A program made the position numbers and the translations under genes. DNA of 64,000 nt from positions 22,320,001 to 22,384,000 of the forward strand of contig CM060733.1 in the NCBI GenBank assembly GCA_030704615.1. The letters run 5' to 3'. Every line of letters starts with the position of its first letter. The stretch's first letter is position 1. The notes beneath the pieces were generated by a model. It was not told the origin of the DNA, did no database searches, and saw only the letters and a list, made by a program, of their open reading frames with translations. The DNA is from Takakia lepidozioides. Lineage: Eukaryota > Plantae > Bryophyta. Shown here one piece after another: positions 19,261 to 46,400 of the stretch.

Positions 19261-19261
19261 T

Positions 19262-22225
19262 CTAGGATTTCCATTTCTCCTCTCTTTCTTCATAAAAATG
19301 TGGTGGGTAACTGCTTATTTCTCCTTCAATTGGTGTTACTGTCACTACACCACAGCGGATACCTTTTAAACAACTTAGGCCTTCCAGCTGCATCTCTGCA
19401 ACCTGCTCCCACTCTGGGTGTGCAGCGAACAGGGTAGCTTCCTGCTCCTCATCCAGTCCTCCCCTCCAGTCATACTCCCTGACCCCTCGAGGTCTTCTCG
19501 TAGCAGGTAATCTACTAGATTTCTTAGTGGTAATTTGTATCTTGTGCATCCCATTATGCACAGTTAGTATCTGGGAATTCCAGTCATGGAATACCCTGGC
19601 CTGTTTCAGCCACGGGCGTCCCAACAATAAGGAGTAAGCTTCCATGACTTCATCCATTTTTAACACAGTTACTGTGATCATAAAGATCATCTTTTGAATC
19701 TGTATCTTAACTCCTCTTATCAATCCCAATGGCTGTACACTTCTTTGATCTGCCATTGTTACTGTAAATGGGGCTGGTTTCCTGTTACTTAGACCAAGCT
19801 TCTGCCTTAATTGGTCTGTCATGATATTCACTCCAGAGCCTCCATCTATCAGTACATCAGTTAGTTCTGTGCTTCCAATTCTCAACTGGATTACTGGCAT
19901 AGAATCATCAAAGTCCAGGACTGTTTCTCGCCCTTCCGGCTTCACATTATAACTGGTCACCTTGCTGTTCAGGTCTGTGTTTCCTGTCATATGGGCAATT
20001 TGATTGATTGCTTGATACAGCCTATGTCTACAATAAGGTGCCACAGCCAATAGCTGTCCAATGGTAATCTCCGCTTTGGTCTGGCATATTACTTCAGCCA
20101 AAGTCCCTTCATTACTCTGCATGTCTGCAGCTTCTTTCTTCCTTTCATCCTCACTCATTTCTTCTTCTCCATCAGAATCAGAGGAATCTGCCATAGGAAT
20201 ATCAGTACTCTTCTGCATTTCCCTTATGGTATCTGCCACTTCTTTGTGCAGTTCTTTCTCATCTCTCCAAGCCTCATCATCTTCAGGCACATCACTGCCA
20301 TCTTCATTATCATCATCTTCCTCAACTACTGGAGGTATTAGTTTGGCTTTGCTTCTCGTTACTATCATTGTACTTACTTCTGGTACAACACATGGCCTAA
20401 CCATGTGAGCTGCCACCACTGGGCCCTCATTCACAGGAGCTCTCATCTCATTCCGGTGTCTAATCCAGAATGAATAGGCTGCCTTGCGATGTCCTGCCTG
20501 ATTACAATAGTAACACAGTTCTTCACCATTGGGTCCTCGCCCTTGGTCTGCTCTTGGATTACCTCTCCCTTCCATACCATTGTTATAACCACCAGGCCTA
20601 CCATAGTGGTCCTGATCACTGTTTCTTCTTGGCTGGGGCTGCACTTGATGCACCCTTACTTGCCTAGGTTCTCTAGTTGGTGTCCTTCTGTTGTAGTAAC
20701 AATTCTACCAAACACCCTTCCTCCAATGTGTTGCAGCCTCTGTGACATACTTCTTCAAGATTTCTTCTAATCTTTTCTCATAGTTATCCCTCTTCAACTT
20801 CTCCTTCCTCTTACTCTTCCTTTTCAGCTCTTGCTCTTCTTCCTCATCTGACTCATCCTCAGAGTCCTCATCATCCCTTTTCTCTCTCCTGAGCATTCCC
20901 AATTGCTCAATTCTGTTCGCTGTTTCAAATGCCTCATCCACTGTATTATGGAGTAACATATCCACTTTCTTTTGCAACTCTGGTCTTAGTCCACTCACAA
21001 ACCAAGTTTTCTGTAAACCTGGTGCTGGTACAGCAGCCAGCTTTTTCATCATCAATTCCATTTTTTCCATATACTCCTCAACAGTTTCATGCTTCTTCTG
21101 CTTTAACTGTTGTAAACTTCCATACACTTCATCCTCAGTTTTACTTGTCCTGAACCTATTTCGGAATGCTGTATTCAAGCCATTCCAGGTTAGGAAATGA
21201 TTATCAGGGAATCTTGCATACCATTCACTTGCTTTCTTGATAAGTGAACAAGGAAACAGTCTCATCTTGGCATCATCGCCATTCTCATTGTTCACTATAC
21301 ACATGTGCTCAAATTGGCTAATGTGTACATCGGGATCCCCTTTTCCTGAATATATTGGAAAAGGTGGTTTTGCCCGTGTTGGTTGTAACGCCATCTGTGG
21401 CCCTACCTTCTGCCCATTGACAGATGCGGGCACCCTTGCTGGTGCTGGTCCTTGAGGACCTGTTGTAGTTGTGGTGGATCTTCCACCCAGTGGTGGCCCC
21501 TGAGCACTCTCTGCTACTGGCCCCACGATATTCACAGTATTCCCAGCTCCAGTTGCACTACTTCCCACACTCCCTGTCCCCCCAGAGCCAGATCTGGTCT
21601 GCCCGCCTGATCCCCCTGAGCCGACACCTTCGTTGGCCTATGATCCAAGTGCTCCACTTGATCCAGGTCCAACGGGTTGGGATGTCCTGGTTGTAGTCTC
21701 AACCTCAGCTGTTGGGTCTACTTCTTCATACTCTTCCTCTTCTAATTTCTTCTCTCTGTTTTCATCCTCCAAGTTCTGCCCTTGGGCTTCTTCTTCACTC
21801 ATGTAACTCAACTGCAATGGTGTTGGAGAGTCTGAACTCTCCGTTGGCTCTGTCACATCCTCTCCTCCTTCTTCATTTTCCGTCTCAGAAACTGGAGTTC
21901 CTGCTCTTGGTGTTCCATGCCAACTCTTATCAAAGATTTATGTCAAATCTTTTATCCAGGGATGTACTTCAGATCTTTCACCTCGCGGTTGATCTTCTTC
22001 CCGTACCAATTCCCTTAATCTTTCTTGCAAAGAAAAAGAAGGAGTGACATCCAACTCTAGTTCTTCCGGTATGGGTGATGTATTCTCTGATCTTAATGGT
22101 GTGAGAGGTCCAGATGATTCCCCTATGTCTATTCCTCTCTCCCAAAGATATGGATAATTAGCTTTCAGATAACTTTTTCTTTTTGTTGAATATCTCTGGA
22201 GTCTAGCTTCTCTTTCATCACTCAT
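19262..22225 (-). pseudogene. B1 gag-protease, disrupted
   Basis: Retrotransposon gag motif (YSGKGDPDVHI...LFPCSL...ASEWY), CYYCNQAGH knuckle, protease LIDGGSG and LLGRPWL. Confidence 0.9.
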
Positions 22226-22246
22226 GTCCCATGTCTTTCATTTCTT

Positions 22247-22741
22247 TTAATGTGGCAATAACCAAAACTCTCTTCTGTAGTATCTCTCGTATATGCCTGG
22301 GTTTCTTTCAAGCTTCAATGCACCCTTGGCTATACTAGAAGTCTCCGTTACCATATAACCATATGGCAAACAAGTCCGGAAAGCTGTTCTTGGTGTGAGT
22401 TTGATCCACAGACGATCCTTTGGAATCCAATTCTTTACCAGTACAAGCTCTTCATGCATATGAGTATAAACATTCACCTTCCTTTCCTCCCAGCCTTCAA
22501 ACTCTACTCGCTTAATGGATAGCAATGCTATCACATAAACCAATGTTGGTAACCAACGTGCTCTTCCCCTACAGGCCACTTGATAAATCTTTATCACTCC
22601 TTTCTCCAGACCCCACTCAGGGTCAGCATCATGCACTCTTTTAAGAATGTTTTCTTTACAACCGTGTGGCAATTCCAAGAACCTCTGAAAGAATCGTTTG
22701 GACAATCTTTCTTTCTCCGTTTCACAGGGAATTTGATTCAC
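22247..22741 (-). CDS. B1 extra ORF upstream of gag, unknown function
   Basis: 164-aa ATG-initiated ORF just after the PBS. Conserved in frame in copy B4 (45797-46265). Confidence 0.65.
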   Translation of the reverse strand: MNQIPCETEKERLSKRFFQRFLELPHGCKENILKRVHDADPEWGLEKGVIKIYQVACRGRARWLPTLVYVIALLSIKRVEFEGWEERKVNVYTHMHEELVLVKNWIPKDRLWIKLTPRTAFRTCLPYGYMVTETSSIAKGALKLERNPGIYERYYRREFWLLPH

Positions 22742-22814
22742 ATCAAATTATTTAATTCTCCAACCACCATGATCCCACCAGATGCCTGTCACATCTGGTT
22801 GTTCATGACCCAGT

Positions 22815-22832
22815 TCCCCAGTATGGTCGCCA
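22815..22832 (-). other. Primer binding site of B1 (tRNA-Arg-like)
   Basis: TGGCGACCATACTGGGGA, 2 nt after the LTR-terminal CA. Confidence 0.75.
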
Positions 22833-22834
22833 AA

Positions 22835-23715
22835 TGTCGAGCGGCTTTTACTCACCCATCCCTTCGCTATCCGAGGTGGAAACTCCAAGATAGAAGAGTT
22901 GGATATTTCTAAGCACTCAGCCCGCTCAGTACAATCAGTCATGACCTACATCTAGTGAATCATGGTTGTGCTTCCCAATTGTATTCCTTCTTGCCTTCAT
23001 GTTATCAATTCACCTTATCTGATACTGAAGCATCAGATTGCTTCAGTATCTACTTAATTCCAATTATTCATGCATTCATTTCATAGCTTCACTCATGTCT
23101 CTCTACGCAGTGTGCTTGTATCGAATAAGTATCAGATTACGATTTATCAGGTACTAGGGCAATGTCAAAGTGACTCTAATCCGCCCTAGAGTATCACTAC
23201 AACTCTGCATGAAATAAAGCATCTACTGTTCATCTCTCCCCCTACTCCGTGCTCTCGTTCTTGCTTTCCCCTGATCTCCTCTCCTCCCTGACCAAGAAGC
23301 GCTCCCCGTGAAGTGTCCCCTCTTTCCGTTGCCGCTCCCCTTCTCTGCCCGCAAGCTATTCTAACCACCTAACTAATTAACCGTCATCCCTAAAGTAACA
23401 CGTTCCTTCTGCAGATGTCATTCCCTCACAGTCGTTCCCTGCCAATGATAATTGTTCCCTATGTACTGTGACAGGCTGTGTCAAGCTGCGCCGAGCTGTG
23501 ACTGGCTGTGTAAGGCTGTGTCGGGCTGTGTCGGCTGTGCGAAGCTGTGGCGGACTGTGTCAGGCTGTGTTGGGCTATGTCACCCCCCCCCCCCCCCCCC
23601 CCCTTAAGCCTGCTGCTGCCACCCCTAAGGCTCCTGTTGGTCTCAGTCTGCGCAAAAATTAAGGGTACCCCATAGAACCCGTAAAAGCGTCTAAGTCCCA
23701 AGCAACCCTCTAACA
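22835..23715 (-). repeat. 5' LTR of B1
   Basis: TGTTAGAGGG...GCCGCTCGACA. Contains a long G run (~23583-23603) and a CACAGCC array. Confidence 0.9.
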
Positions 23716-29595: not shown

Positions 29596-29788
29596 CTCCC
29601 CAACCTTCTGTGCATAGTTGGGATTCATCATGTATCTTGCCTGTTTGATTGGTACAGAACCTGGTTCCAACTCAATCTTGTGATGGCATATTTCAGGGGG
29701 TATCCCCTTCAGGTCTTTATAACTCCAGGAAAATACATCTTTGTATTTGATAAATAGGCTCTTAGCTTCCTCAAAGAATTCAGGCTCC
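29596..29788 (-). pseudogene. Family B RT N-terminal fragment (continuation of B4)
   Basis: LEPEFFEEAKSLFIKYKDVFSWSY...QKVGE matches 18940-19131. Confidence 0.9.
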
Positions 29789-30594
29789 AGAAGAGTAGAT
29801 GGGGACATTGTGTACGAGATGCCGCCGACAGAAAACACCAGCGGGCCAGCTGGAAGGCATGGACCGCAAATATGACGAAAACCCATGGACTATAACAAAA
29901 ACTACAAATCTGAAATTGCCGTTGCTAGAGAGGAAAGACACGGCAGTCAGGTTTGTTGCTCTGTCTCATCCTTCCTGAAGTCTGTGGCGATTTCTCTTGT
30001 GTATCTTCGAATGAATTCATGTATTATGATAATGCTCTGCAATTTCAGAATGTGCGACCTTCTTGGAGAAGTCGGCACCGATTTCTCGTGTGTACATTGG
30101 TATCTTGCGGCACTTTGAGATTTTTCTGCAATATCAAGAGCCTTGTGTCGGAAGACACACCATCTCAAATGAATATGTCGGAGAGCATCAATGAGCAGAT
30201 GGTCCGAGCAAGAAAGAGACCACCGCATTTTAGAGGATTCATGGCGGACAATGCGAATGCAAACTGGGCGGCGGTTCGAAATGTTTATGGTGGCGGGAAC
30301 CCTATGCCAGGTAGGGAGAGAACTTGCGGATTTCATTGGGGACAGAGTCTTCAGAGGCATACCAAGGACCTCATTCGGCCAAACTTTCAATCGGCACACA
30401 TTAAATTGTGTGGACAATGGAGGTCGGCCGCCACAGCAACAGAAGCTGAGATATCATTCATGTTAATCAGATCATGGTGGATATCATCGGGAGCGGCAAC
30501 CGAAGAAGATATTCCCACCCTAGATAGTTGGCTTTCGTGGTGGACATACCGGTATGCCCAGCTCGGGTCATTCGTGAGGGAGGTAAGAATGTAG
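29789..30594 (+). pseudogene. MULE-type transposase fragment (start of GCM-like region, internal deletion, part of DDE core)
   Basis: VDGDIVYEMPP..GMDRKYDENPW is paralogous to 38915-39030. FRGFMADNANAN...RERTCGFHW gives a catalytic D plus the CxxH signature of Mutator-like transposases. Confidence 0.72.
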
Positions 30595-30980
30595 GTGCCA
30601 AAGTCACCACTACTATATCCATTGCTTTTGCGGTTGCTAACGTGAGCAGATGATGGGTGGACTGTCACCGCCAGAATCGGTGCTCGGGGAGTCTGTGCCG
30701 ACTTCCTACCTCCGGCATCATGCATGCCTTCTGCATGATAGGGAAGTCTGCACCGACTTCGCATTGGCTATTTTGACAGTGTGTCCAGCCACCTCTTTAA
30801 GTCTGCACCAACTTCCCATGGCAATGTTCCGGGAGTGCAGATAGGGAAGTCTGTGCCGACTCACCACTGTGCTATTACTATATTGTTCCCCGAACCCAAT
30901 GCAACTCTGTGCAGCCTTCTCGTCCTTCTCTGTCACATGGAAGTCTGTGCCGACTTGTCAGTGGGGTGCCACTGTGCCCC

Positions 30981-33900
30981 GGAGCGGTCATAGATGGCCG
31001 CAAGAGAGTAGTCACGCTGCCATGTGGGAATGGTGGCGAGGTCTTATGAGTGACGGAAACGCCCAAACCCGTGGGAGGGCGAATAAACCTTCTGTCAGCA
31101 AGGGAGTGGGCCGTGGAGGAGGCACACGAGCCCCAGTTCTTGCTCTACATTAGAGAAGTGAAGGGAGAAGGCGATGGGGAGCCGAGCCTAGATTGGATCA
31201 AGGGGATTTTGGAGAAATACCAGGATGTGATGCCGGAGGATTTACCAAGCGGCTTGCCACCGCGAAAAGGAGTTGACCACAACATTGAGGTGATACCAGG
31301 ATCGGAACCGCCTCCCAAGGCGCCCTACCGGTTGAGCCACAGAGAGTTGGTCGAGCTGAAGACTCAGCTCAAAGATCTAATGTCAAAGGGGTACATCCGG
31401 CCGAGTAAGTCACCTTACGGAGCCCCGGTGCTATTCGCAGACAAGAAGGATGGGACGCTGCGGATGTGTGTCGATTACAGGGCTTTGAATAAGGTGACTA
31501 TAAAAAACCGGTACCCTTTGCCAAGGATCGACGACCTTTTTGATCGGTTGGCAGGAGCGAAGTATTTCAGCCGGATCGATCTGCGCTCCGGCTATCATCA
31601 AATTCGAGTGGCGGAAGGAGATGAGGAGAAGACCGCGTGCAAGACAAGGTATGGTTCATATGAGTTCTTGGTGATGCCTTTTGGACTCACCAATGCTCCC
31701 GCGACCTTTAGCACGATGATGAACAGCCTTTTCCAGGAGTGGTTGGATGACTTTGTGATCGTGTACATCGACGACATCTCGGTGTATTCGAAAACAAAAG
31801 AGGAGCACTTGGAGCACCTCAAAAGGGTGTTCCAGAAATTGCGGGAAGGGAAGCTGTATGCCAAAGCTTCAAAGTGCGAATTTGGGGTCACAAAAGTGGA
31901 GTTCCTGGGGCATGTGATTACACAGGATGGGATCAGAATGGATGACAGGAAGGTGAGGGCAATCTTGGACTGGGAGCCTCCGACTTCGGTCCCGGGAGTG
32001 CGATCCTTCCTAGGACTCGCCTCCTATTACCGGAAGTATGTGAGAAATTTCGCCAAGATCGTGGGGCTGCTGTCATACCTTCTGTGTACATCCAAAGTCT
32101 GGGCATTGAACACCTTTTGTGGCCAAGCTTTTGCTGAATTGAAGCAGCGGATGGCGGAAGCTCCAGTCTTGAAAATCCCAGAGTTTGATCGTCCGTTTGA
32201 GATTCATACGGATGCGTCAGACTTCGCGATTGGGGGTGTACTGATGCAAGATGGACGTCCAGTGGCTTACGAAAGTAAGAAACTGAATGAAGTGGAGCAA
32301 CGGTGGCCGACGCACGAGAAAGAGATGAAGGCGGTGGTGCACTGTCTTGAGCTTTGGCGCCACTATGTTGGTTCCAACCTAGTGAAGGTGTTCACGAACA
32401 TTGTCACGGTGAAGTATTTTGCCACGCAGCCCAAGTTGTCCCCAAAACAACTTAGGTGGCAAGATACTTTGGCGGTGTTCGACGTGGATATCCAGTACAA
32501 ACCGGGACGGGACAACGTGGTGGCCGATGTTTTAAGTAGAAAGCAGCAGCTAATGTTGGTGTACAGGGGCGAGACGGCGCTCCAACGGAAGATCCGGAAT
32601 GCTTGCCGGAAGGCTGAGCTGGCGAAGTCCGTGATGCAGGACTTGAGGATGGGGGTTAAATCGCAGTTCCACTTGCAAAATGGACTGCTCCGGTATAAGC
32701 AAAAGTGTCTCTACGTGCCGAAGGGAGGGATCAGAGATAGCCTCTTGAGAGAATGTCATGATAGCCCGCTTGCGGGCCACGGCGGAGCCAAGCGCACTGC
32801 AGCACTCTTGAAGAAAGAGTATTTCTGGCCCAAACTGAGGGAGGAGGCAGAGGAGTATGTCAAGACATGCACCACATGCCAACAAAACCGGAGCGAGTAC
32901 AAAAAGCAAGCGGGGCTGTTACAACCCTTGCCGATTCCAGAGGGGACTTGGGAAAGCGTCTCGATGGATTTCATGACTGCTATGCCGCTGTCAAAAGGAT
33001 TCGATGCAATCATGGTGGTGGTGGATAGGTTCAGTAAAATGGGCCATTTCATCCCCACCAATGAGATGGCAACGGTGCAGGAAACAGGGCGACTTTACTT
33101 CGCCCACGTCTTAAAGCATCATGGAGTCCCGAAGGATATTGTCTCGGACCGCGATCCAAAGTTTACGAGTAAATTTTGGAGGGCACTTTGGAAGAAGATG
33201 GGGACGAGGCTGAAGATGAGCACCGCCTTCCGACCTACGACCGACGGCCAAATGGAAAGAGTGAATTCCGTAGTGAAGCAGATCTTGCGGAATTACGTGT
33301 CGGCAGACCAAACAGACTGGGTGGAACACTTAGACACGGCAGAATTCTGTTATAATAACACAGAACACTCCGCAATGGGAGTTTCCCCTTTCGTATTGGT
33401 CTATGGAAAAGCACCTCTGGTGCCGACAAGTTGGGCCGCCCAGGACGTTGAGGAACCGGCAGTAGCGGCTGTACTGGAAAAACGCGAGCGTTTGTTGAAG
33501 CTCGCAAAGTACAACATTGCTAAAGCTAGGAAACGGTATGAAAGGCAGGCGAATCGGAAGCGGAGGGAAGTGAAGTTTGAGGCAGGCACGGAGGTCTGGT
33601 TGAACATCAAGAATTTCCGACTACCTCCGGAAGTGAGTCCAAAGTTCGTACCTCCGTATGCAAGACCCTTTCGCATCCGGAAGGTTATGAATGAGGATGT
33701 GTATGAATTGGAGCTGCCGGCAAACAGCAAGGTGCATCCAGTATTCCACGTCTCCCTTTTGAAGCCTTACTTCAAAGATGAAGTGCGTCCGAATCGGCAT
33801 CAAGTGTTGCGTCCGCCACTTGTGCTGTTGGATCATGAAAATGAACCTGAGTATGAGGTGGAGGCAGTACTTAAGTCGAGGAGGTTCAAGAACCGAGAAA

Positions 33901-34062
33901 CGGAGTATCTCGTGAAATGAAAGGGCTATCATCATGTGGAGGCATCTTGGGTGCGTGCCTCAGAAATGGGAAACGCATCCGAGGCGGTTGCAACTTTCGA
34001 ATGGCGACCTCAAAAGCGGAAGAAGCGCTGATGGGGACATCAACCTTAGAGCGTGGGGGAGG
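30981..34062 (+). mobile_element. 5'-truncated chromovirus (Ty3/gypsy): protease tail-RT-RH-INT-chromodomain, then PPT
   Basis: 956-aa ORF 31050-33920 with YIDD, TDAS, H2C2 and SMDF/SDRD. Chromodomain EYEVEAVL...YLVK*KGY...SW has a Trp-to-TGA change. PPT GGGGGAGGA at ~34055-34063. Confidence 0.95.
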
Positions 34063-34269
34063 AAATGCATGCTTAGCCCGGCTTAGCTAGCTCAGGAATC
34101 CAATTGCAAAAACTTGTATTGTACAAAAATATGTTATAAAGGAAATGGGTTCCAAATGTTGTGCGTCCTATTTTGTTTGGAATGGTGATGCATGGTGTGG
34201 TTGGCTAGTGTGTAGAATACATGCTAGCTTACAAAAGTGGGAGAGGTAAATTGGGAGGTTTACTATTTC

Positions 34270-34317
34270 ATGAGCGCATGAGCCCATGAGCCTATGAGCC
34301 TATGAGCTCATGAGCGG
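34270..34317. repeat. Six 8-bp tandem units ATGAGCNN
   Basis: atgagcgc atgagccc atgagcct atgagcct atgagctc atgagcgg. Confidence 0.85.
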
Positions 34318-34417
34318 GCATCCGCGGAATTGGAATTTTCCTGCCTTTATTGACGGTGTTATGTCCTCTTACCTCGGTAATAGGGTCTGTTTCTCCTGGT
34401 CCAGGATGCGGAATGAG

Positions 34418-34700
34418 GAATTTCGGCGCCGTTATTCCCAAGAGCAGTGTGCTAAAATGGTGTTTTGAAGACATCCACCGGGGTATTTCGGCACCGAAAT
34501 TACCTCTTAAAATGTGATATAGTGCGGTATTTAAAGGCGCAGAACGGGCTATTTCGGCGCCGAAATACCCAAGTGGAATGTGGTGAAGTGCCTTGTGCTG
34601 AAGGCTTCCATTGCGATATTTTGGTGCAGTAATTCATCCGTGGAATTTTTGAGGCCCATATAACGAAGGCGCAAATTGGGCTATTTCGGCGCCAAATTTC
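34418..34700. repeat. Array of five palindromic ATTTCGGCGCCGAAAT-type sites, ~65-bp spacing
   Basis: Cores start at 34424, 34489, 34555, 34622 and 34687. Confidence 0.85.
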
Positions 34701-35322
34701 CCAATAGGAATGTTAGAAACGGCAGGGTTTTCATGGCTTCAAGTTCCCGGCTCGATGGTGTGCATAAATTACTTGTAGGGTTCTTCACTGAAGTTTGTGT
34801 CTCTTCTGCTTTTATTATAGATTTTGGTTGGCGGAAGAAATGTAGGGAATGGACAAGCAGTCTGAACACAATGATTTTTCAAATCGTCAATATTTTCATT
34901 AAGTGTTTCAGAACTGTACAACAAAAGGATCCAAATGAGACTTTGCTATGGTGAGGATCCGCTATCACTGTCCGATGCATCCCCGCCCTCATGCAAGGAT
35001 GGCTGCCTTCCACCTGCCTCCGAACCTGCACTGCCGCTACCGCTGTTACTCTGAGAAGCCCTCCCTCAAAAATACCATCCTCACCAGCCGGAACTGTCCA
35101 CCTGGGTGCGGAAGTGTCCTCAACATTCCCCTCGCTCTCGGACGCGGATTCTATTACGAACTTCCCTACTCTGCCTTTCACAATTCTATGTTTGGCCTCA
35201 CGCCTCATTATAATTCTCTGCTCATTCCCGTATGTCAATTGCTCTAACCGAGTAGGCCTATCCTCCCTCCTGATGGCTTCTTTGGCAGCCGTGTCTGCAT
35301 AGGCTGGTAGAAAAAAGGGCTT

Positions 35323-37065
35323 CTAGGGACTCGCGAGAAACGATTTTTTGGCAAAGAATGGCCGATGCGATTCTGTCTCCTCCTCTACAACAGGGTCCGA
35401 TTCGGGCAAGTCTCCCAGCTTCTCCTCGTCGGACGACTCTGCAAGGCTGAGTGTACGCACAAACATAGAATGAAGTACATTAGAGAATTCAAACAGGGAA
35501 TCATCGGCAGGTTGCATGGTCCCTACAACCGAAACCAATACACTTACTATGGTGCAACTCACTCGAAGACAGGCATTGGGGGAAGCGGCTTCGAGCGCCC
35601 CTGCATCGAACGAATTTCCCGGACTTCCTCCTCTTCATCTTCCTCCTCTCCTTCCACGTCCTCTTCTGCGTTTTTGGGATCCTCAGTCGGAGGCAGACGT
35701 TGAAGGCCCGCCAAATTGTAATCGTACAAGGCCGTATCCCCCTCAAATGAGAACACAAATTGGTTCGACATCCTTCCCGCCCACATACAGGCACCTGCGA
35801 ATTCATACGACACAACCACAGCCAAACTCAAGAATGAGTCGCTTCCTCGCACAAGCAAACATACAGAAACAGAAATGGTGTCAATTTCGGTGCCGCATTC
35901 AATTAACGTTCTCACCTGTATTTGCAGTGACGTCAAGGACCCTGCCTTCAACATCCGTACACGTTTCCATGAGTGTCTGGATGAATGCAGGACTCCTGGT
36001 CCTGCCATACCTCCATGGCTTGCCCGACAAATCACAAAGAATGTCCTTCTCTCCCACATGGTTGAACAGGACGTTATACTCCAGTGGATCAACTGTGGAA
36101 TCAACAAGTCTTCCTGCTTCACGTAATTTGAATTTCGAATGTTCCTTCACGAAGCAAAATGCCTGAAAGATATGAGTCTGCAGAGAAGGAAATGAAAACG
36201 TCAGAGGTGGCCTACACGTACAGGGGCAATTTCGGCGCAGAAATTGACATAGCAGAGGAGAACCACAACATACCTTCTGGCCATCGTTGAGAAGACCCTG
36301 CGTGTTGATGCAAGTCCAGATCTTTTTCAGGATAGGTGCTGCACTTCTCCCTGTCCATACTTTGATATCATTCTCAGTGACTTCTCCATCGGCTGCTAGC
36401 ACAACAACACAGCCAACGTCGTCCAACATGTTGGCTGCGAACCCGAATGTGTGGCTCCAGTATCTTTCGTCGTACTTGTTCCACCAGGGAACTGAGCCCA
36501 GCCCCAGTATCTCCTGTCCATCCGGGATATCCACAAGGATCATGTCGATGGAGACTTTCACCGCCCTGCCCCCGACTGTGCTCTTTTTGCCGTGGCTCAT
36601 CGCCACAAAATACTCCATCATCTTTGTGTAGCCAGGAGTGTCCTCCATATCATTGCCAGTGGCCTTCCTCTTCCCCTGGTGGGCCTCGATCGCCTTCCTC
36701 AATCTCGTTATCTCCAGCCTTCTGGTCAGAGCAGTTATGAAATTTTCATTAACACACTCCACAATTGTGGGTGTTTTGAGGACTTCCCTGCCCGCAATGT
36801 GCACCGCACGGTAGGGTCTGCCAGGTGCATCCTCGTATAGTGATCTCTTCGCAGCCGACCCCCCGGAGCGCTGGCCCTTGTGAATTTTCGGACGAGGTGT
36901 GGCCCCCTGGGTGTTTTCCTGCTGGAAATCGTCGTCGAAATCCTCCTCATCTGGCTGACTGTGTTGCTGCTTCTTCTTCTTGGGTGTGGGGGTCTTCGTC
37001 TCTTGCCCCTGTTTGCGCGTTCTTTTCTTCCTGTCCTTGGGCTGCTCAGCTGCCTGCTTCTCCAA
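35323..37065 (-). CDS. Spliced beta-class DNA amino-methyltransferase (N4C/N6A)-like gene, 3' exons
   Basis: Exons ~37065-36274, 36177-35916 and 35794-~35563, plus a probable further exon from ~35446, with GT-AG boundaries in phase. Motif IV-like IDMILVDIPDG precedes RTRSPAFIQTLMETCTDVEGRVLDVTANTG|ACMWAGRMSNQFVFSFEGD (motifs X-I-II). Confidence 0.72.
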
Positions 37066-37104
37066 TTCTCATCCAAAAAAAAAAAGTAAGTGCCGGGTTT
37101 GGAC

Positions 37105-38075
37105 GAATTTCGGCGCCGAAATTCATCCGTCGCATAGAAAATGTAATATTAGAGTTACTCATTGCGGACAGTAAAGATGAATTTCGGCGCAGAAATTGAT
37201 CCATTTCAAAGAAAAATAAATATTGGAGGGAGGGCATTGGATGAATTTCGGCGCCGAAATCCGGCGCTCAAACCCTGAAAAGAATTTGGAGGGATGAAGT
37301 CGGCTGAATTTCGGCGCCGAAATTCATTGCTCGCGAAGGAAAATAAAAAATTTCGGGAGGACTTCGGATGAATTTCGGCGCCGAAATTCATTGCTCGCGA
37401 AGGAAAATAAAAAATTTCAGGAGGACTTGGAATGAATTTCGGCGCCGAAATTCAATGCTCGCGAAGAAAAAATAAAATCGGGAGGATTTCGGTTGAATTT
37501 CGGCGCCGAAATTCATTGCTCGCGAAGAAAAAGGAAAATTAAAAGGGAGTACTTGGATGAGATTCGGCGCCAAAGTTCATCTGTCGGAAAGAAAAATAAA
37601 AACAAAAAGGACTTCCGATGAATTCCGGCACCGAAATCCATCCGCAGGGCAGCAGAATTAGGGTCGGAAAAGGAGATGAAGAATGAATTTCGGCGCCGAA
37701 ATACATCCATTCTGCCGATTCAGGATTACTGTCATTCGGAAGTCGGCACCGATATCCGGACACGTGGTGAATCACGACTGTAATCAGGAACACATTCATC
37801 CGTATTTTGGCATCTAAATTCAACCCATATGTGCAGATACAATTTAATGAAGAAGAAGTTCATCCGAATTTCGGCACCGAAATCCATCCGTTGGGTGCTT
37901 GGTTAGTTTAATGAGATAAACAAATTACGATTTCTGTTGCCAGAATTCATCCCCTGGCTTCCAAAGCTGTTACATGACAGAGATGTTCATCTAGATTTCG
38001 GTGCCGAAATTCATGGGAAGGCCTGATTTATTGTACCCCAAGTGGTTGTACATTACAATTCAGGCACCAAATATC
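37105..38075. repeat. Array of ~16 palindromes GAATTTCGGCGCCGAAATTC with ~63-64-bp period
   Basis: Cores at 37111, 37185, 37249, 37312, 37376, 37440, 37501, 37565, 37626, 37691, 37744, 37808, 37872, 37934, 37999 and 38062. Confidence 0.95.
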
Positions 38076-38261
38076 CGATGTGAACTTGCTGTTCTCATCC
38101 GTTTTTTTAACGTACGTTACACACCTTCATCTTTACGTGCATTGATCACCCATCCTGTTGGATACGGAATCCTCCAGAAAATCATTTGTGTTATTAGGTA
38201 GGACACACTCTTCTCATTGCAGAACTTCGCTGCGGAGCGTACCTAGAGGTCCCGTCTTCAA

Positions 38262-39500
38262 AATGGACTCCCGTGTTTGGGTCAACGTGTACTTCCATCC
38301 TGATTATCTGAAAGCTAAAATACCCTGCGACCAAGGATTTGCGATTGTCACTTAGCAGTACTTGTGTGTGAAGTTCGGGCTCCGCCCTGGAACGGTGTTT
38401 TTGGAAGAGAAGACGAAGGATGCTTATGGAAATTTTTCTGGAAAGTGCCGTCATTCTGCATGCAGATTTCGGAAAAGGCAAAGAGTGGCGGCTCCCAGCT
38501 TCTGAATCCATCCGGTACAGTGCCATTGGTGAAATCGTGCCTAAAGAGTTCCCACGCTGGAACTTGGTTGATCCTCCTTCCACAAGAGGGTCTGGCATGC
38601 AAGATGTGAAGGATGTGGGCACCTCTTCACAAGCAGAGAAGCCCAAACATGTGAAAAGGGAAATCCAGGAAAACAGGGAAACAGTCGTCCACGACTTATC
38701 CAGTGACGATGAAGACTGTATGGTCCTTCCATTGTATGTTTCGAAGTCGTCCATCACTAGGAGTGTTCAGCATACACCGTCCGACTCAACTTCCGTCCGC
38801 TCAGTAATCGACATATTGCGGAGGATGAAGACAACGGGTTCCCGCTCCAGTGACCTTCTTAGGCTTGATTACGACAAAACTCCAATCCATTCTGTGGAAA
38901 CTTTGCCTGATGTTGTGGATGGGAATGCTATCTACGAGTTCCCTCCAATGCCGGCAGGCGCAGGCCCAGACGGCATGCTCGCAGGAATGAACAGGAAACA
39001 TGACGGCCACCCTTGGTGTGTCACCAAAACTTCATCGTCCAACCTGGGTGATGGAGTTCGAGTGAGATATGTATTGTGTGCTGGGCATCTTAAATGTTTC
39101 TCGAGCACATGTTACCATTACACTAGCAAAGGCACCAGGAATGAGACTGACTGGATTGGCAATTCGTCGACCCCATTTTGGCCTCAAGGTAGAGTTCCTG
39201 CAGGGACGTTCAAGTGTGCCCATTGCAACGCAGCCCCTACGTGCATGGCAGTGTGCAACGCCAAGCAGTACTACGTCGGGACCGTCGGCCCAGCGTGCAC
39301 CAGAGCATGCATTCACATCGGAAAGCATGAGCACCCCCTCGCCAGAGGCAATTGCAGAGTCGCTTTTCAACAAGCCCAGGATATTATCAAGGAGGAGGTG
39401 AGGTTGAGGCCGGGTGCAAAACCAAAGCAGATACAGCTCGCATCGGCACATAGGATTGCAATTGGCAGAATAATGTCGGAGGACAATTCGGATAAACCGT
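38262..39500 (+). pseudogene. MULE-type transposase N-terminal half with GCM/WRKY-like zinc DNA-binding domain, 3'-truncated
   Basis: HDGHPW..T, CAGHLKC...C, CAHC, C..C and HIGKHEHP pattern as in GCM-domain proteins. Paralogous to 42841-43456 plus 29789-29900. Confidence 0.72.
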
Positions 39501-39997
39501 CTTGTACTGGTGGCTGGAACTAGCACGCGTCGTGTTCCAATCAACTTCATCCGTGCGAACGTGTCAGGGGTCACAATCTCTTCATCACCCATACGGCAAA
39601 AAGTGTTGGACGGTGGCAACGCTTCGGGAGACGTGGCTGCTTACGCATCTGCTCATGCATAGTGGTTGCATGTTCCACCGCTTCGCTCTCTCGCTCCTTG
39701 CCCTTCTGCAATGACGTTCTCCTGCGTTTCCTCTCCTTATGCGGCATAGTGGTAGCATAGAGTTTGTGGAAGGTCAGGCGACTCCGGCAAAGAGGAGGAC
39801 GCGGGATTTTGGGAAGCCGCCGACGACACGACTTAAGCTCCGTCTCATGCATGAAATGCAGACCTCGTTATCCGGAGACTCGGATCGCCCACCGGTGAGA
39901 GATTCGTGCTTCGCGGATGTGAAGCACTCCATACGCAATATTCCTTTTACACCTTTTTTTTGGCGTGCAGTGTCTCATGTTTTCCTGTTTGTTTGAT

Positions 39998-42480
39998 ATG
40001 GGAGCTGGGGAGGGATTGCAGGGGGGCGAGGCAACACAGTCAACTTTGGATACTCCTGCCCGGGTGCTGCGCTCACAAGGTGGAAGTGCATCGAGGCAGA
40101 CGAGTCCTCATTCAACACCTCAGATATCGCCTCCGAAAAGCCCACCTAGAGTTCGGAAGCCGAGAAAGCAGAAGGAGCCCATGGCTTCGCCAGTAAAACC
40201 CCTAGGGAGACTGGAAGCGGAGATATTGGGTTTGTAGTCAATTTCAGAAAACATAGATGCGGTGGAGGCCGCTGGAGATGTGGGAGTCGGATCTGCAGAA
40301 GGGCGGCCCATTCAGCTAACAGAAGGAGAGGACGATAACGTGGTACGACTTGGCGACGATCAGAACCTGCTGGAGCTTGCGGAGGAGCAAAACCTCCAGG
40401 ACAGTACACATGCTGGTGAGAGGGGTGAGGGAAGTGACAGAGGTGATACAAGTAAGAAACTGGTGGCGGGTATGCTCATGAGCGCACGAGACATGAACAT
40501 AGCAGCAAACAGGTTGCTGGCAGAGACTCATAGCAACATAGGCCGCGTTTTGGGCTCCATGGTGTATCCGGAGAACCTCAAAGTTCCTTTGTGTCGCATG
40601 GTAAGCCTTCCAGTTGTAAGGCAAGCACTGCCAGGGGATATCGATCGACTGAAGCACAACTTCAGAGAAGGGTACAGACGGGGGTCGGCAGCATTCTACG
40701 TTTCCATTGAGAATGACCAGGGTGTCACAAGGGGCCCCACTGCAGAGGAGCTTCAGAATTGGGGCCCCCACTGGCACACTGTTAATGCCGAGTTTGAAGC
40801 CTATCTGAAGACTAATCCGACATTCGCACACATGGAAGGGAAGATGTTCTTCGTTTGGGACGGGAACCACAGGATGCTTGCCTGGACAGAGTACATTGCT
40901 GAAATGCATCCGCAAGATATCAGTTGGCATTACATGGTGGACTGCATTGTCGTGAAGGTGGACGTCAGGGACAGAGGACTGTTGAAGGGTGCCATGGCGG
41001 ATATAAATCTGTAAGTATACAATTACATCCTTGTGTACTGCCTATTGCGGCGCCGAAATAGGCAATGTTCACCACTGTCATGCACTCTATGAACTGGAAA
41101 TTGGATTGCTGTGCCGAAATCATATTTTCATGTTGTTTTTTTTCTCCATGGCAGGGTAACAGAGAGGGCCTTCGTGGAAACTCATCTGGCACATACGCTC
41201 TACAGAGTGCAAGAAGTGGGGACAGCTCCGCTGACAGACTTCCAAAAGTCCCTCGATCCCGAGCTGTACAGGAAGTCCCTAGCGAAAGCAGATCGCACCT
41301 GGTACCGACCAACACTGGACGCCATGGTGGAGATCCTCTATTCGGTGAGGTTCATCTCAAATTTCAGTATCAATTTAATGTTATTTGTTGCAGGGATCCG
41401 TGGCCTGACTGTATCTGCTGGGTATGGGAATGCAGACGAACATCAGGGATGACTTGGCCTATGCCAAAAGGCAGTTCTTTGAGAATGATGCCCCCAACAA
41501 GGCGGACGCGTCGATAGAGAGTCATATTGTGCAGGCAGGGAAGCAATCCCGGACCAAGTACAGGTCCAAACTTGTTAAGCAAGTTGCAATCGCTGACCCT
41601 GGTCTTGGTGCCGAGTTCCTGGCGGAGATAGGACTGCATTACTCCAGACCCATGAAACCGGAAATGTCCATGGAGAAACTTCATCACATCGCAGTGTCCT
41701 GTGTTGAGCCGGCGGAGAAGGTAAGCATGTGTTTATTCTTGTTTTGTGACTTCTCGCGATTCTTATGTTGGAGTTCTTGTCTGACCGATGTGAGGTGGCT
41801 GCAGACGAGGTGGCTGCGAATCTGGAACGGCCATACAAACACAAAGCTGCTGTACCACTTTCCCATCGAGCCAACAGACGACAAAATGAACGACTGGCTC
41901 AATGTCATGACTTGGTGGCATCAGGTATAATTTTCTCCTATTCTGTGTTGGACATCGTCGCAATTTCAAAATCATGAATGTTTTGGAAACCTGCCATGAT
42001 GCAGGTACTGACCCACGCCCAGGAGCAATTGGACTGCAACACCACCACTTTCAAGTTACAGATCGACTGGACGAAGCCTGAGACAATGGAGAACTACGTG
42101 CAGTCCTGGCGAGGGCGCTTCGCAAACCTCTTTTTCAGAGAAATTGCAAAGGCAAGACGCAGCGTATACATCGAAGAGCAGGAGAGTGCCGACAAAGCGG
42201 CAATGCGTGTCCTGTTCAGGTAATCTGCTGACAATGCATCCCCCTATTTGCAGTTTAGATGATTTGGTTAAGCAGCGATGGATATTGCGGCGCCGAAATA
42301 TACCTCTGCAAAATGTGAGTTCTGCGTAATTGGGGCACGGTCCACTCCGTATTTCGGTGCCGAAATACCTTGTGCATTGGCAACTTCCACTTGCATGATG
42401 CATCGGTAGAATGATTTTTGTTGAACTGCCTCGTGATTGCAGGTACATAAACTTTTTCACCTCGTCTACGCGCGGACGGA
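39998..42480 (+). CDS. Spliced gene with N-terminal ParB/Srx-like domain (one in-frame TAG at 40235; 3' end broken)
   Basis: VRQALPGDIDRLKHNF...FFVWDGNHRMLAW. In-phase GT-AG exons 39998-41010, 41155-41344, 41436-41720, 41805-41924, 42005-42219 and 42443-~42480. Confidence 0.72.
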
Positions 42481-42795
42481 GATATTCGTAATGAATTTCG
42501 GCGCCGAAATATGGATGAAATGTGCCCAAGTGCAACCGTTTTCACTGTCCCGGAATTAATTCCGGCTCCGATATCCCACTGACAGGTTTGCTCATGACGG
42601 ATGAGGACTTCGGAAGCGATGAATTGCGGCGCCGAAATTCATCCGTCCGCTGTTGAAACGTACCGACCTGACTGTTGAATGTCATAGGCAGGGGATTTTC
42701 ATGGCGGTTGGGTTTCATGATGTGCGGATATTTCATTCAATGCCGGCTGCTCCGGGAACAGCATCCGGTGAACGGAAGGTATTTCGGTGCTTGTG
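42280..42795. repeat. Third cluster of CGGCGCCG palindromes
   Basis: Cores at 42288, 42355, 42499, 42563 and 42627; half-site at ~42785. Confidence 0.85.
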
Positions 42796-42840
42796 CTTGC
42801 ACTCTGTTCAGAGCACACCTTCTACTGTGCCACTGTCAAC

Positions 42841-43456
42841 ATGGCTGAGCGCGTTCGCCTAACCTGTCCATCTGCAAATGCGTCTGTAAGAGTCGAAGCA
42901 AAGGATGGTTCGGTGATATTCGCAGACAAGGTTCTCAGATCTCGGTTTGCATTGCAGGATACGACAGCTGTTTTCAAAGTTGAGGAGGTGGGAGAGGATG
43001 GCGTTGTGGAAACTCGGATTGTCAGTCCTAAACGAAATGATTTTGCGCGGGCGTATGTCATTCCACACGAAACAGGTCGACAATACATCGTATATGGGCA
43101 GCAAGCATCATCGTCGAGTGTGTCGGCATCCCTTACTCCACCGACTGCCGCATCTATATTTGGCCCAGGTCTTGCGAAGACGGAGAATATTCAAATATTG
43201 AGTGAGGAGGATGAGGACTGCATGGTGGTTGGCAGCAGACGAGCACACTCCGCACCTCCGCGCACGCGCGCAAACACCACGGAGGACGACGATGCACATG
43301 AGGTCGATGCCGACGTGTTTACTCCCACACCCGCAGATGCGGTTACAAATTCAATGGTGGACATCTTGCAGCTCCTACGCACCAGCACCACATCCCGCAA
43401 CGAGCTTTCTAGGATCGACTTTCACAGTGTTCAAATAGTGAAGGTGAACCATTTAC
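42841..43456 (+). pseudogene. Second MULE-type transposase N-terminus, broken at ...IVKVNHL
   Basis: ILSEEDEDCMV and SMVDILQLL...ELSRIDF align with DLSSDDEDCMV and SVIDILRRM...DLLRLDY in 38420-39523. Confidence 0.75.
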
Positions 43457-46400
43457 ACACCCCAACTTTCACCATTCTTGGTTCCTCCTCAGTTCCCACA
43501 TTGATTTCTCTCACCTGCTCTTCAGCTATGATAGTCCATCCAGCCACTACTTTATCCTGCAAACTCACAGTGGCTGGTTCCTCTAGGATTTCTATTTCTC
43601 CCTCTCTTTCTTCATAGAAATGTGGGGGGTAACAGCTTGTTTCCCCTTTAATTGGTGTTGTTGTTACTGCACTACAACATATACCTTTGAAACAATTTAA
43701 TCCTCCCAGTTGCATTTCTGCAACCTGTTCCCACTCTGGGTGTGTAGCAAATAGAGTAGCCTCCTGCTCTTTATCAAGTCCTCCGCACAGTTAGAATCTG
43801 AGTATTCCAGTCATGGAATATCTTGGCCTGTTTCAGCCATGGTCATCCTAACAGTAGGGAATAAGCTTCCATGACATCATCCATTTTCAATACAATCATA
43901 GTGATCTTAAGACCAACTTCTGAATCTATATTCTTACTCCTCTTATCAAGCCCAATGGTTGTACACTCCTTTGGTCTGCTAGGATTATTTCTATAATCCT
44001 GATTCCCTGGCTGGTAATTCCCCCTTGGATTACCCTGATAGTTGCCTCCGGGATTGCCTTGGTAATTCCCTTTTGGATTACCTCTTCCTGCCATACCATT
44101 GTTATATCCACCAGGCCTACCATAGTGGTCATGGTCATTGTTTCTTCTTGGCTGGGGCTGCACTTGATGCACCCTCACTTGCCTAGGTTCCCTTGTAGTT
44201 GTTTTCCTGTTGTAATAACAATTCTCAGTGGAATGGTTATCCATCTTACAGATAGCACAATGTTTCTCTTTCATGTGGCACTCAGCTGTGGCATTGCCTT
44301 CATTTTGGCATTTTGAACACCAGGCCCCCTTCCTCCAATGGGTTGCAGCCTCTGTTGCATACTTCTTCAAGATTCTTCCAATCTCTTTTCATAGTTGTCC
44401 TTCTTCAACGTTTCCTTCTTCTTGTTCTTCCTCTTGAGCTCTTGCTCTTCTTCCTCATCTGACTCATCTTCAAAGTCATCATCATCCCTCTTATCCTTCC
44501 TGAGCATTCCCAATTGCTCAATTTTGTTAGCTGTTTCGAATGTCTCCTCCACTGTATGATGGGGTAGCATATCCACTTTCTTTTGTAACTCCGGTCTTAG
44601 TCCACTCACAAACCAAGTCTTCTCACAAACCAAGTCTTCTGTAATCCTACTGCTGGCACAGCAGCCAGCTTTCTTATCATTAACTCCATCTTCTCCATGT
44701 ATTCCTCAACAGTTTCATGCTTATTATGTCTCAACTGTTGTAGGCTACTGTACACTTTGTCCTCAGTTTTGCTTGTCCTGAATCTAATCCGAAATGTCGT
44801 GCTAAGGTCATCCCAGGTTTGGAAATGGTCATCAGGAAATCGAGCATACCACTCATTTGCCTTCTTGATAAGTGAACAAGGGAATAGTCTTAACTTTGAA
44901 TCATCATCATTCTCATTGTTCACTATAAACATTTTCTCAAACTGATTGATATGTACATCTGGATTCCCTTTCCCTCCATAGATTGGGAAAGGTGGTTTCG
45001 CTCGAGTTGGGGCTACTGCCGCCATTTGTGGCCCAACTCCCTGCCCTGTGGCAGGTGCTGGTCCTTGAGGACCTGCTGTGGTTGTGGTTGAACTCCCACC
45101 AGGTGCTGGCCCCTGGACACTTCCTGCTACTGGCCCCCCTATATTTGCAGTACCCCTAGCACCAGTTGCACTACTTCCCACACTCCCTGTCCCCCCAGAG
45201 CCAGATCCAAGCTGCCCGCTTGATCCCCCTGAGCCGACACCTGTGTTGGCCTGTGATCCAAGTGCTCCACTTGATCTAGGTCCAACAGGTTGGGATGTCC
45301 TGGTTGTAGTCTCAACCTCAACTATTGGGTCTCCTCGTCTTCCAAGTTTTTCTCTCTGTTTCTTCTTTCTCACTCATATAACTCAACTGAAGTGGTGTTG
45401 GAGTGTCTAAACTCTCTGATGGCCCTTCTTCACCCTCCTCCCTCTCGTTAGCTGGTGTATCAGAAACTGGTGTTCCTGCTCTGGGTGTACCGTGCCAACT
45501 TTGATCAAAGATTTCTGTCAAATTTTTAATCCAGGGATTCCCTTCAGATCTTTCCCCTCGTATTTGATCTTCTTCTTCCACCAGATCTTTTAGTCTCTCT
45601 TGTAAAAAATAAATAGGTGTGATATCTAAATTAGAATCTTCAGGTATGGGTGATGAATTTTCTGGTCTTGGTGGTGTGAGAGGCCCAAATGACTCTCCTA
45701 TATTTATTCCCTTTTGCCAAAGATATGGATAATTAGCTTTTAAATAGCTTTCTTTTTTCGCTGAATATCTGTGAAGTCTAGCTTCCATTTCATCACTCAT
45801 GACCCATATCTTTCACGTCTTTGATGAGGTAATAACCAAAGCTCTCTCCTGTAGTATCTTTCGTATATGCCTGGATTTCTTTCAAGCTTTAATGTACCCT
45901 TGGCTAGACTAGAAGGCTCCGTTACCATATATCCATATGGAAAGCAGGTCTGAAAAGCTGTTCTTGGTGTAAGTTTGATCCACAAGATATCCTTGGGAAT
46001 CCAATTCTTTACCAATTTAAGCTCTTCATGCATATGAGTAAGAACATTCACTTTCCGTTCCTCCCGGCCTTCAAACTCCACTCGTTTAATGGATAGCAAC
46101 ACTATCACATAAACCAGTGTTGGTAACCAACTTGCTCTCCCTTTACAGGCCACTTGATAAATCTTTATCACTCATTTTTCCAGACCCCACTCCGGATCAG
46201 CATCATGCACTCTCTTGAGATTATTTTCCTTGCAACCATCTGGCAATTCCAAGAACCTCTGAAAGAATTGTCCTTCTCTACTGTGCTCTCCATCCTTGTA
46301 CTCAAGATCGTGCTTCCTTCCCTAATGCTAGTCGTGATGCAAGAAGTGACCCCCTCCATATAGCTACTCTGCATATTCTACCTGCAAGCTGTTCTAACCA

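Follow-up and report, generated by a model that had tools for sequence, protein, structure and literature searches.

DNA methyltransferases of the prokaryotic type are rare in eukaryotes, and those of rotifers (N4CMT) and of Marchantia (DN4MT1) each revealed a new epigenetic mark. In Ectocarpus, ParB-like and DNA methyltransferase accessory proteins are encoded by the transposon Sola1-1_Ec32, on the other strand from its transposase (Dinatale et al. 2025, PMC12477816). The Plavaka and Mutator elements of red algae have related cargo, and in Plavaka the ParB-like and methylase-like genes are beside inverted-repeat arrays (Petroll et al. 2025, bioRxiv 10.1101/2025.02.11.637652). Also, ParB-fused Dam-type enzymes have been catalogued in chlorophytes and chytrid fungi (Iyer et al. 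2016, PMC4738411). The general kind, a ParB-methyltransferase accessory gene of a transposon, is already known from algae, and our search of the literature turned up no paper that describes such genes from land plants. Here we describe a methyltransferase-like gene in a 64,000-nt stretch of the genome of the moss Takakia lepidozioides (CM060733.1, 22,320,001-22,384,000). We call this whole stretch the window, and all coordinates below are positions within it.

The window is eukaryotic and repeat-rich, and the gene is on its minus strand, with three open exons (Table 1). Our joint reading, which we consider likely, is that the window holds the 3' half of an accessory gene of a transposon, that this half is dead, and that it encodes a domain that was derived from a beta-class methyltransferase and is probably a non-canonical binding domain. 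The novelty lies in the selected, family-wide loss of the aromatic residue from the catalytic loop of a CcrM-type domain that land-plant transposons probably carry.

A protein family from moss and metagenomes with a beta-class methyltransferase fold

By protein sequence comparison, the window frame is homologous to a real protein family. A phmmer search of 1.84 billion protein representatives found 25 relatives at E ≤ 1e-3 (best P0001, E = 5.5e-14). The named relatives are hypothetical proteins of 758-810 amino acids (aa) from the moss Ceratodon purpureus, which are encoded on four chromosomes and include KAG0605740.1 and its paralogues. The remaining relatives were called as genes in metagenomes and read assemblies. 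Alignments of the family (A1 and A3) contain the conserved blocks VDLIxxD-x-P-x-G, VPxWN, FxFAxxxLxDxG, KxWxxxNxLP, PWRGxREKxPxF(M/I)QxL(I/V), and VxDxxxxTG, and a further block, A(S)..A......R.....E.D, is seen in the small number of rows that extend into exon C.

For the searches, the exons of the window were used as separate pieces and intron 1 was translated in frame (an open reading frame, or ORF, of 388 aa at 37065-35899 on the minus strand runs through it). Pfam gave no match to the exon pieces even at E ≤ 10, a word-index protein search with the 388-aa ORF gave no match, and phmmer of the window frame against the PDB gave only noise. The relatives do not reach the gathering score of PF01555 (26.7 bits) either: the best of them, P0004, has 15.7 bits (E = 0.015). 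This match and those of P0012 (E = 0.15) and P0018 (E = 0.21) are below threshold and fall on the motif X-I region, which is in exon B. ESM features point to PF01555 clusters (at 0.90).

The Rossmann methyltransferase fold is present in the AlphaFold model of the window's domain (35917-36630, minus strand; built with alignment A3; pLDDT of 80, pTM of 0.78). The low-confidence stretches of the model (116-118 and 142-150, within low blocks at 111-150) are in or next to the residues that are encoded by the intron (120-151). When the model was compared with the PDB by Foldseek, the best match was CcrM (2.6e-6), followed by M1.HpyAVI, M.BceJIV, MTA1, M.PvuII, and M.RsrI. VIA-align also put CcrM first (Z = 12.1 over 182 residues), with M.MboIIA (12.0), M.BceJIV (11.9), M1.HpyAVI (11.2), rotifer N4CMT (10.9), M.PvuII (10.6), and M.RsrI (10.3) next. 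A model of the domain from Ceratodon gave an identical list of structural matches, with a Foldseek value of 1.3e-8 for CcrM. Finally, when the family profile was compared with the PDB, the non-artefactual matches with E < 0.1 were M1.HpyAVI/DpnA (0.018) and CcrM (0.041), and M.RsrI was next at 0.57.

Two other assignments were considered and rejected. WD40 repeat proteins were the top PDB matches of the family profile, but these matches add up many sub-threshold "PDG...WN" repeats of 1-2 bits each. Membership in MT-A70 (METTL3, METTL14, and MTA1) is not favored by the ranking of folds, which prefers the bacterial beta-class enzymes (VIA-align Z of 10.3-12.1, versus 8.4-10.2 for the second-tier MT-A70 structures), and the Pfam model for MT-A70 (PF05063) matched neither the window pieces nor the relatives. 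A Dam domain of the DIRS type was also considered, and the adjacent retroelement ORF proved to be a Ty3/gypsy pol with an integrase.

The order of the motifs can be read in the sequence as IV, X, I, II, which is a permuted order, and the peptides that an earlier note on this DNA had quoted for IV, X-I, and II were found in that order on the minus strand (Table 1). The placement of motif IV is backed by hhalign: when the family was aligned to YhdJ of E. coli (P = 3.5e-4), VDLIxxDIPdG was placed on VDLIFADPPYN. In the profile comparisons, the family's matches to PF01555 and to the PDB are located close to the C-terminus, in the X-I region. The domain almost certainly descends from a beta-class DNA amino-methyltransferase, and the profile alignment indicates that DIPD truly occupies the position of DPPY in these enzymes. 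The earlier note had described the gene as beta-class methyltransferase-like; this holds for the fold and the motif order but not at the level of PF01555.

The empty searches with the window's own pieces (Pfam, word index, and phmmer against the PDB) are what would be expected if the resemblance to the motifs had arisen by chance in non-coding DNA or in an unrelated ORF. We consider this explanation to be already refuted, and give it practically no weight, because of the phmmer hit at 5.5e-14, the conserved introns (see below), the fold matches with Z of 10-12, and the hhalign placement on YhdJ.

The catalytic loop and selection on the domain

In characterized amino-methyltransferases, the aromatic residue of the DPPY, NPPY, SPPY, or DPPW motif stacks on the flipped base. 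Among 23 aligned rows of the family, there is no canonical (D/N/S)-P-P-(Y/F/W) loop, and the window has DIPD. The loop of the family begins with Asp (17/23), which is followed by a hydrophobic or other residue (8 I, 5 V, 4 A, and others) and then by Pro (22/23). The fourth position is D in 8 rows, E in 8, T in 3, N in 3, and S in 1, and is never aromatic (Y, F, or W in 0/23); next comes Gly (16 rows) or Asn (4 rows). The family pattern can be written as D-[IVA]-P-[DE/NST]-G. The change from DPPY to DIPD that the earlier note had pointed out is borne out by the alignment to YhdJ, and the comparison of paralogues that it had suggested places the aromatic-free loop across the family, so that it is not due to decay of the window copy.

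In motif I, the Asp is kept in 17/18 rows and the T-G is kept, while the first Gly of GxG is variable (5 S, 5 G, 4 N, and 3 A; the window has N). The Glu of the motif II strand (FEGD, ALERD, or ALEED) is also kept in the family. The model of the Ceratodon protein has low confidence in the region of the S-adenosylmethionine motif.

Across three paralogues from Ceratodon, the ratio of non-synonymous to synonymous divergence (dN/dS) in the domain is 0.055-0.094, with dS of 0.5-0.6 (244 codons; the mapping of the domain's exons was checked). Outside of the domain, the ratios are higher in the linker (0.21-0.28) and in the tail (0.19-0.33), and the N-terminal part has values similar to those of the domain, given a codon mapping of that part that is unchecked. 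Because of this strong purifying selection (dN/dS < 0.1), the domain is functional in some sense, although it lacks the base-stacking aromatic residue.

As for what it does, we infer from the family-wide loss of the aromatic residue of the loop that the family is probably not a canonical N6-adenine or N4-cytosine methyltransferase. By analogy, the most likely role of the domain is to bind a cofactor or DNA as one module of a protein by which the element recognizes itself. (The domain may be inactive, or shifted in specificity, or a binder, and we infer the choice among these.)

A second possibility is that the members of the family are active amino-methyltransferases of DNA or RNA, in spite of their non-canonical loop, and would methylate the palindromes of the element to mark or shield the transposon. 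Self-modification has been proposed for the ParB-methyltransferase proteins of Ectocarpus (PMC12477816), the palindromes always adjoin the gene, and the domain is under strong purifying selection. Also, conservation in the alignment is highest in the columns of motif X, motif I, and the catalytic loop, and the family has kept the Asp and the central Pro of motif IV as well as the motif I Asp and the motif II Glu. Nevertheless, an active enzyme seems unlikely because no member of the family has the base-stacking aromatic residue that, as is well established, is typical of all characterized amino-methyltransferases. In contrast, the active enzymes of Marchantia keep TSPPY. Furthermore, the first Gly of GxG in motif I is often lost in the family, and the domain is below recognition by Pfam. 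More speculative still, and in our judgement somewhat less probable, is the idea that the CcrM-derived enzyme of these land-plant elements, with its remodelled loop (acidic in place of aromatic), reacts with or recognizes the CG-rich palindromes in some new way, which would amount to a transposon-encoded self-marking system other than the canonical writing of N6-methyladenine or N4-methylcytosine.

A split and rearranged copy within an inserted block

The earlier note had predicted an intron-containing gene with an exon junction inside TG|A, and both predictions agree with the gene structure in Ceratodon. The domain is split over three exons in the NCBI-annotated gene of Ceratodon, and both GT-AG introns of the window match this homologue in position and phase. 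(We examined three loci of C. purpureus, L001, L004, and L005, on three chromosomes.) In L001, intron 1 comes after residue 531 (KL|TH, phase 0) and intron 2 is inside the Gly of ANTG|AS (phase 1); similarly, intron 2 of the window is in phase 1 and splits a Gly codon. Because the Ceratodon introns share position and phase with those of the window, the TG|A junction is well supported. Several gene calls from metagenomes stop or read through at the position of intron 1 (P0046 and P0003) or of intron 2 (P0014, P0012, and P0047). The contigs from sequencing runs that cover the introns are DNA-like, without splice joints, and the splice sites of the window gene are placed by homology only.

Exon C continues in a different frame of the minus strand after intron 2. 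Its homology is indicated by tblastn matches of P0012 and P0047 to 35855-35679 and by a tblastx match of L002 (a 15.9-kb metagenome contig) to 35798-35721. By eye, the peptide of exon C corresponds to ASIIACARSNRHLIALERD of Ceratodon (MAFFT misplaced the row for the window's exon C in alignment A1). The exon ends at a stop codon (35561-35559) or, alternatively, at a GTGAGT donor at 35562; with the donor, a fourth exon down to 35323 is plausible from the sequence. We also observed that the depth of contigs in two sequencing runs is several-fold higher over 35510-35750, which includes the acidic tail and the 3' end, as compared to the remainder of the gene. This stretch may be common to more copies or to other copies of the repeat.

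Comparison with the other copies indicates that the window contains just the 3' half of a longer gene, which is probably carried by a transposon. Relative to the other copies, there is a break in the frame at 37064/37065: the window copy has TTG and then unrelated sequence, and there is no ATG in the window frame before residue 139. Contigs of other copies, from sequencing runs of the same species (X1 and X2), extend past 37064 in frame and supply an ATG. The 5' part is found elsewhere in the window. On the plus strand, 41514-41927 is matched by the N-terminus of P0004 and by that of the Ceratodon proteins, and the ORF that is just upstream of the Ceratodon gene in L001 matches 40538-41008, also on the plus strand. 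In L001, L004, L005, and L002, the 5' part and the methyltransferase-like part are collinear, with the conserved 5' part, which carries a DGNHR motif, upstream on the same strand. In contrast, the two halves in the window are on opposite strands and face away from each other. A homology search with relatives gave no match in the window for the middle region of the family protein. In another copy, the sequence has a 30-nt loose end at 36194 that is identical to 40372-40401 of the window, so in some other copies the 5' gene runs straight into this half, and the two have one orientation.

The window copy also has changes at sites that are conserved in the family. WRG has become WRY (G in 16/18 rows), and there are replacements of E by T (E in 15/18), of L by Q (L in 17/19), and of P by G (P in 13/18). 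At 36669, six nucleotides (CTTCCC, or two codons in frame) within a short repeat are deleted relative to all of the other copies in the sequencing runs. These runs of the source species contain many divergent copies of the gene as well as deletion derivatives.

Because of the frame break, the lack of a start codon, the displaced 5' half, and the replaced residues, the window copy is probably dead; that it is a non-functional fragment, and hence would not be expressed, we regard as quite likely. The earlier note had implied an intact, stand-alone gene, and this part of its model is contradicted by the break at 37064/37065 and by the missing ATG. If the locus were nevertheless an intact and expressed gene of the host, then the open exons and the canonical splice sites would be expected, and among the variants listed between copies, synonymous changes do outnumber non-synonymous changes in the core domain (6 versus 3, compared to 2 versus 17 in the linker; this is a small and partial sample). 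This explanation is very improbable because other copies continue upstream of the break, a homologous 5' half is on the other strand, conserved residues have been replaced, and the gene is present in multiple copies and is within a block that was inserted into a retroelement.

This block spans 13.7 kb (29790-43459). An intact relative of the interrupted retroelement is at 18940-22545, and the flanks of the block (29597-29789 and 43460-46119) correspond to 18940-19132 and 19139-22545, two stretches that are separated by a 6-bp gap where the flanks join. The block also contains the uninterrupted pol ORF of a Ty3/gypsy element, around which no long terminal repeats were detected within the window. 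A palindrome, TTTCGGCGCCGAAA, has 21 matches with up to 2 mismatches (0.07 were expected), all of them within 34421-42637 and hence inside the block. Copies of this palindrome are in introns of both halves of the gene (at 36230, 41045, 42285, and 42352), and the palindromes hold GGCGCC and CG.

In the three Ceratodon loci, a divergently oriented ORF of 714 aa adjoins the gene and its upstream part at the same offset. This ORF has no match in Pfam and is MULE-like by ESM features (0.88, a lead only). Two pieces of its homologue are in the window in permuted order, so the block has been scrambled beyond a single inversion. Between the Ceratodon loci, the 714-aa ORF is 97-98% identical, as compared to about 90% for the methyltransferase-like gene (dS of 0.5-0.6), and the two seem to have different histories (a mosaic or recombination). 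Separately, L001 contains an ORF of 1148 aa at 19932-23378 (minus strand), 5 kb downstream of the Ceratodon gene, for a hAT-type transposase (DUF659 and hAT dimerisation domains). This is probably a separate element.

The age of the Ceratodon paralogues (dS of 0.5-0.6) raises the question of whether the family has been domesticated, so that it would be a multigene family of the host instead of transposon cargo. These paralogues are intact, their dN/dS is less than 0.1, and the annotation treats them as ordinary genes. However, the gene travels with the same 714-aa MULE-like ORF in three loci, fragments of all three components are together in the inserted block of the window, and the source species has deletion derivatives and many variants. 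We consider domestication to be improbable.

Table 1. Positions of the gene, its displaced half, and other features of the window
Feature	Position	Strand	Description	Basis
Exon A	36274-37065	-	Basic/acidic linker and N-terminal half of the methyltransferase-like domain	ORF list, sequence
Motif IV region	36517-36549	-	IDMILVDIPDG; DIPD at 36531-36520 in the place of DPPY	Sequence
Intron 1	36178-36273	-	96 nt, GT..AG, phase 0; one palindrome copy at 36230-36243	
Exon B	35916-36177	-	Second half of the domain; motif X/motif I region at 35994-35916, with peptide SPAFIQ...VTANT(G); best HMMER matches span this exon	
Intron 2	35795-35915	-	121 nt, GT..AG, phase 1, inside the Gly codon of TANTG|A; degenerate palindrome copy	
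Exon C	35562-35794	-	Motif II-like ACMWAGR...SFEGD (35792-35736), then acidic tail	
Possible fourth exon	35323-35446	-	Candidate only; frame kept if donor 35562 joins the AG acceptor before 35446	Sequence
Displaced 5' half of the same gene family	40262-42480	+	DGNHR-motif region and middle region	Homology
Palindrome TTTCGGCGCCGAAA array	37105-38009		Period of about 64 bp; directly upstream of the break at 37064/37065	
Two pieces of the 714-aa ORF homologue	38759-39493 and 30148-30585	+	Permuted: middle part downstream of C-terminal part	
Ty3/gypsy pol ORF	31050-33920	+	956 aa, uninterrupted (RT, RNase H, integrase, SH3); within the 13.7-kb block	

A proposed role and its relation to known systems

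We propose that the family is a multi-copy accessory gene that is borne by transposons of mosses and related samples, and that the window holds the 3' half of one copy. The C-terminal domain would have come from a beta-class enzyme of bacteria or phage (of the CcrM/M.RsrI type) and would have kept the fold and the order IV-X-I-II. In intact members, the N-terminal part with the DGNHR motif would be in the same protein, and the gene would sit among the element's own palindromes. The family would then have lost the aromatic residue of the (D/N/S)PP(Y/F/W) loop, which became D-hydrophobic-P-acidic/polar-G, and the domain would serve as a cofactor- or DNA-binding module by which the element recognizes itself, much as METTL14 serves METTL3. 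In the window copy, a rearrangement would have put the 5' half on the opposite strand and left a dead fragment.

Several points weigh against this proposal. First, the three exons of the window copy are open and its splice sites are intact, and it may be transcribed from an unseen upstream exon. Second, the 5' half has no ParB match in Pfam, and a three-sequence profile of it had no match in the PDB either. Third, the family still has the acidic residue that follows strand 2 (FEGD) and the D...TG of motif I, and conservation is highest in the motifs of the pocket; an active enzyme with an unusual loop would explain this no less well than a binder. Finally, the assignment of the 714-aa ORF as a MULE is a sub-threshold lead.

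Either these transposons recognize themselves by a binding module with a methyltransferase fold, or there is an unrecognized chemistry. The intact genes of Ceratodon make this question directly testable, and the window copy itself adds only one decayed and rearranged example.

The moss family shares its fold and the order IV-X-I-II with the beta-class enzymes (CcrM, M.RsrI, M.MboIIA, M.PvuII, M1.HpyAVI, M.BceJIV, and YhdJ). It also shares collinear blocks with them (VDLIxxD.P.., W, L.D.G....., W...N..P, K.P......I, and V.D....G). Unlike these enzymes, the moss family has a motif IV of the form D-I/V/A-P-D/E-G, has often lost the first Gly of motif I, and is below the Pfam threshold. Also unlike the bacterial enzymes, it is eukaryotic, its genes are interrupted by introns, and a long N-terminal region is fused to the domain.

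METTL14 offers another comparison. Its catalytic loop is EPPL, and it is the catalytically inert partner of METTL3. As in the moss family, a methyltransferase fold is kept under selection without the canonical residues of the loop. However, METTL14 belongs to the MT-A70 clade and works as a heterodimer with an active enzyme, and the moss family has no known partner of this kind.

The accessory proteins of algal transposons combine a prokaryote-type methyltransferase or methyltransferase-like domain with an N-terminal region of the DNA-binding type, and they are encoded by the second gene of a large DNA transposon, with inverted-repeat arrays adjoining. The moss family shares the domain and the arrays, and would share the N-terminal region and the transposon context as well. 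These systems differ in that they are from algae (and also from chytrids, for the Dam family), and the chlorophyte family is of the Dam type (group 2), not of the CcrM type. The algal papers report no loss of the catalytic aromatic residue; our comparison of the moss family with these proteins is by their descriptions only.

Finally, rotifer N4CMT and the Marchantia enzymes MpDN4MT1a/b resemble the moss family in having a beta-class fold in a eukaryote (Z = 10.9 for N4CMT). N4CMT and MpDN4MT1 are active genes of their hosts with a canonical loop (TSPPY in MpDN4MT1), whereas the moss family, as we read it, is transposon cargo without that loop.

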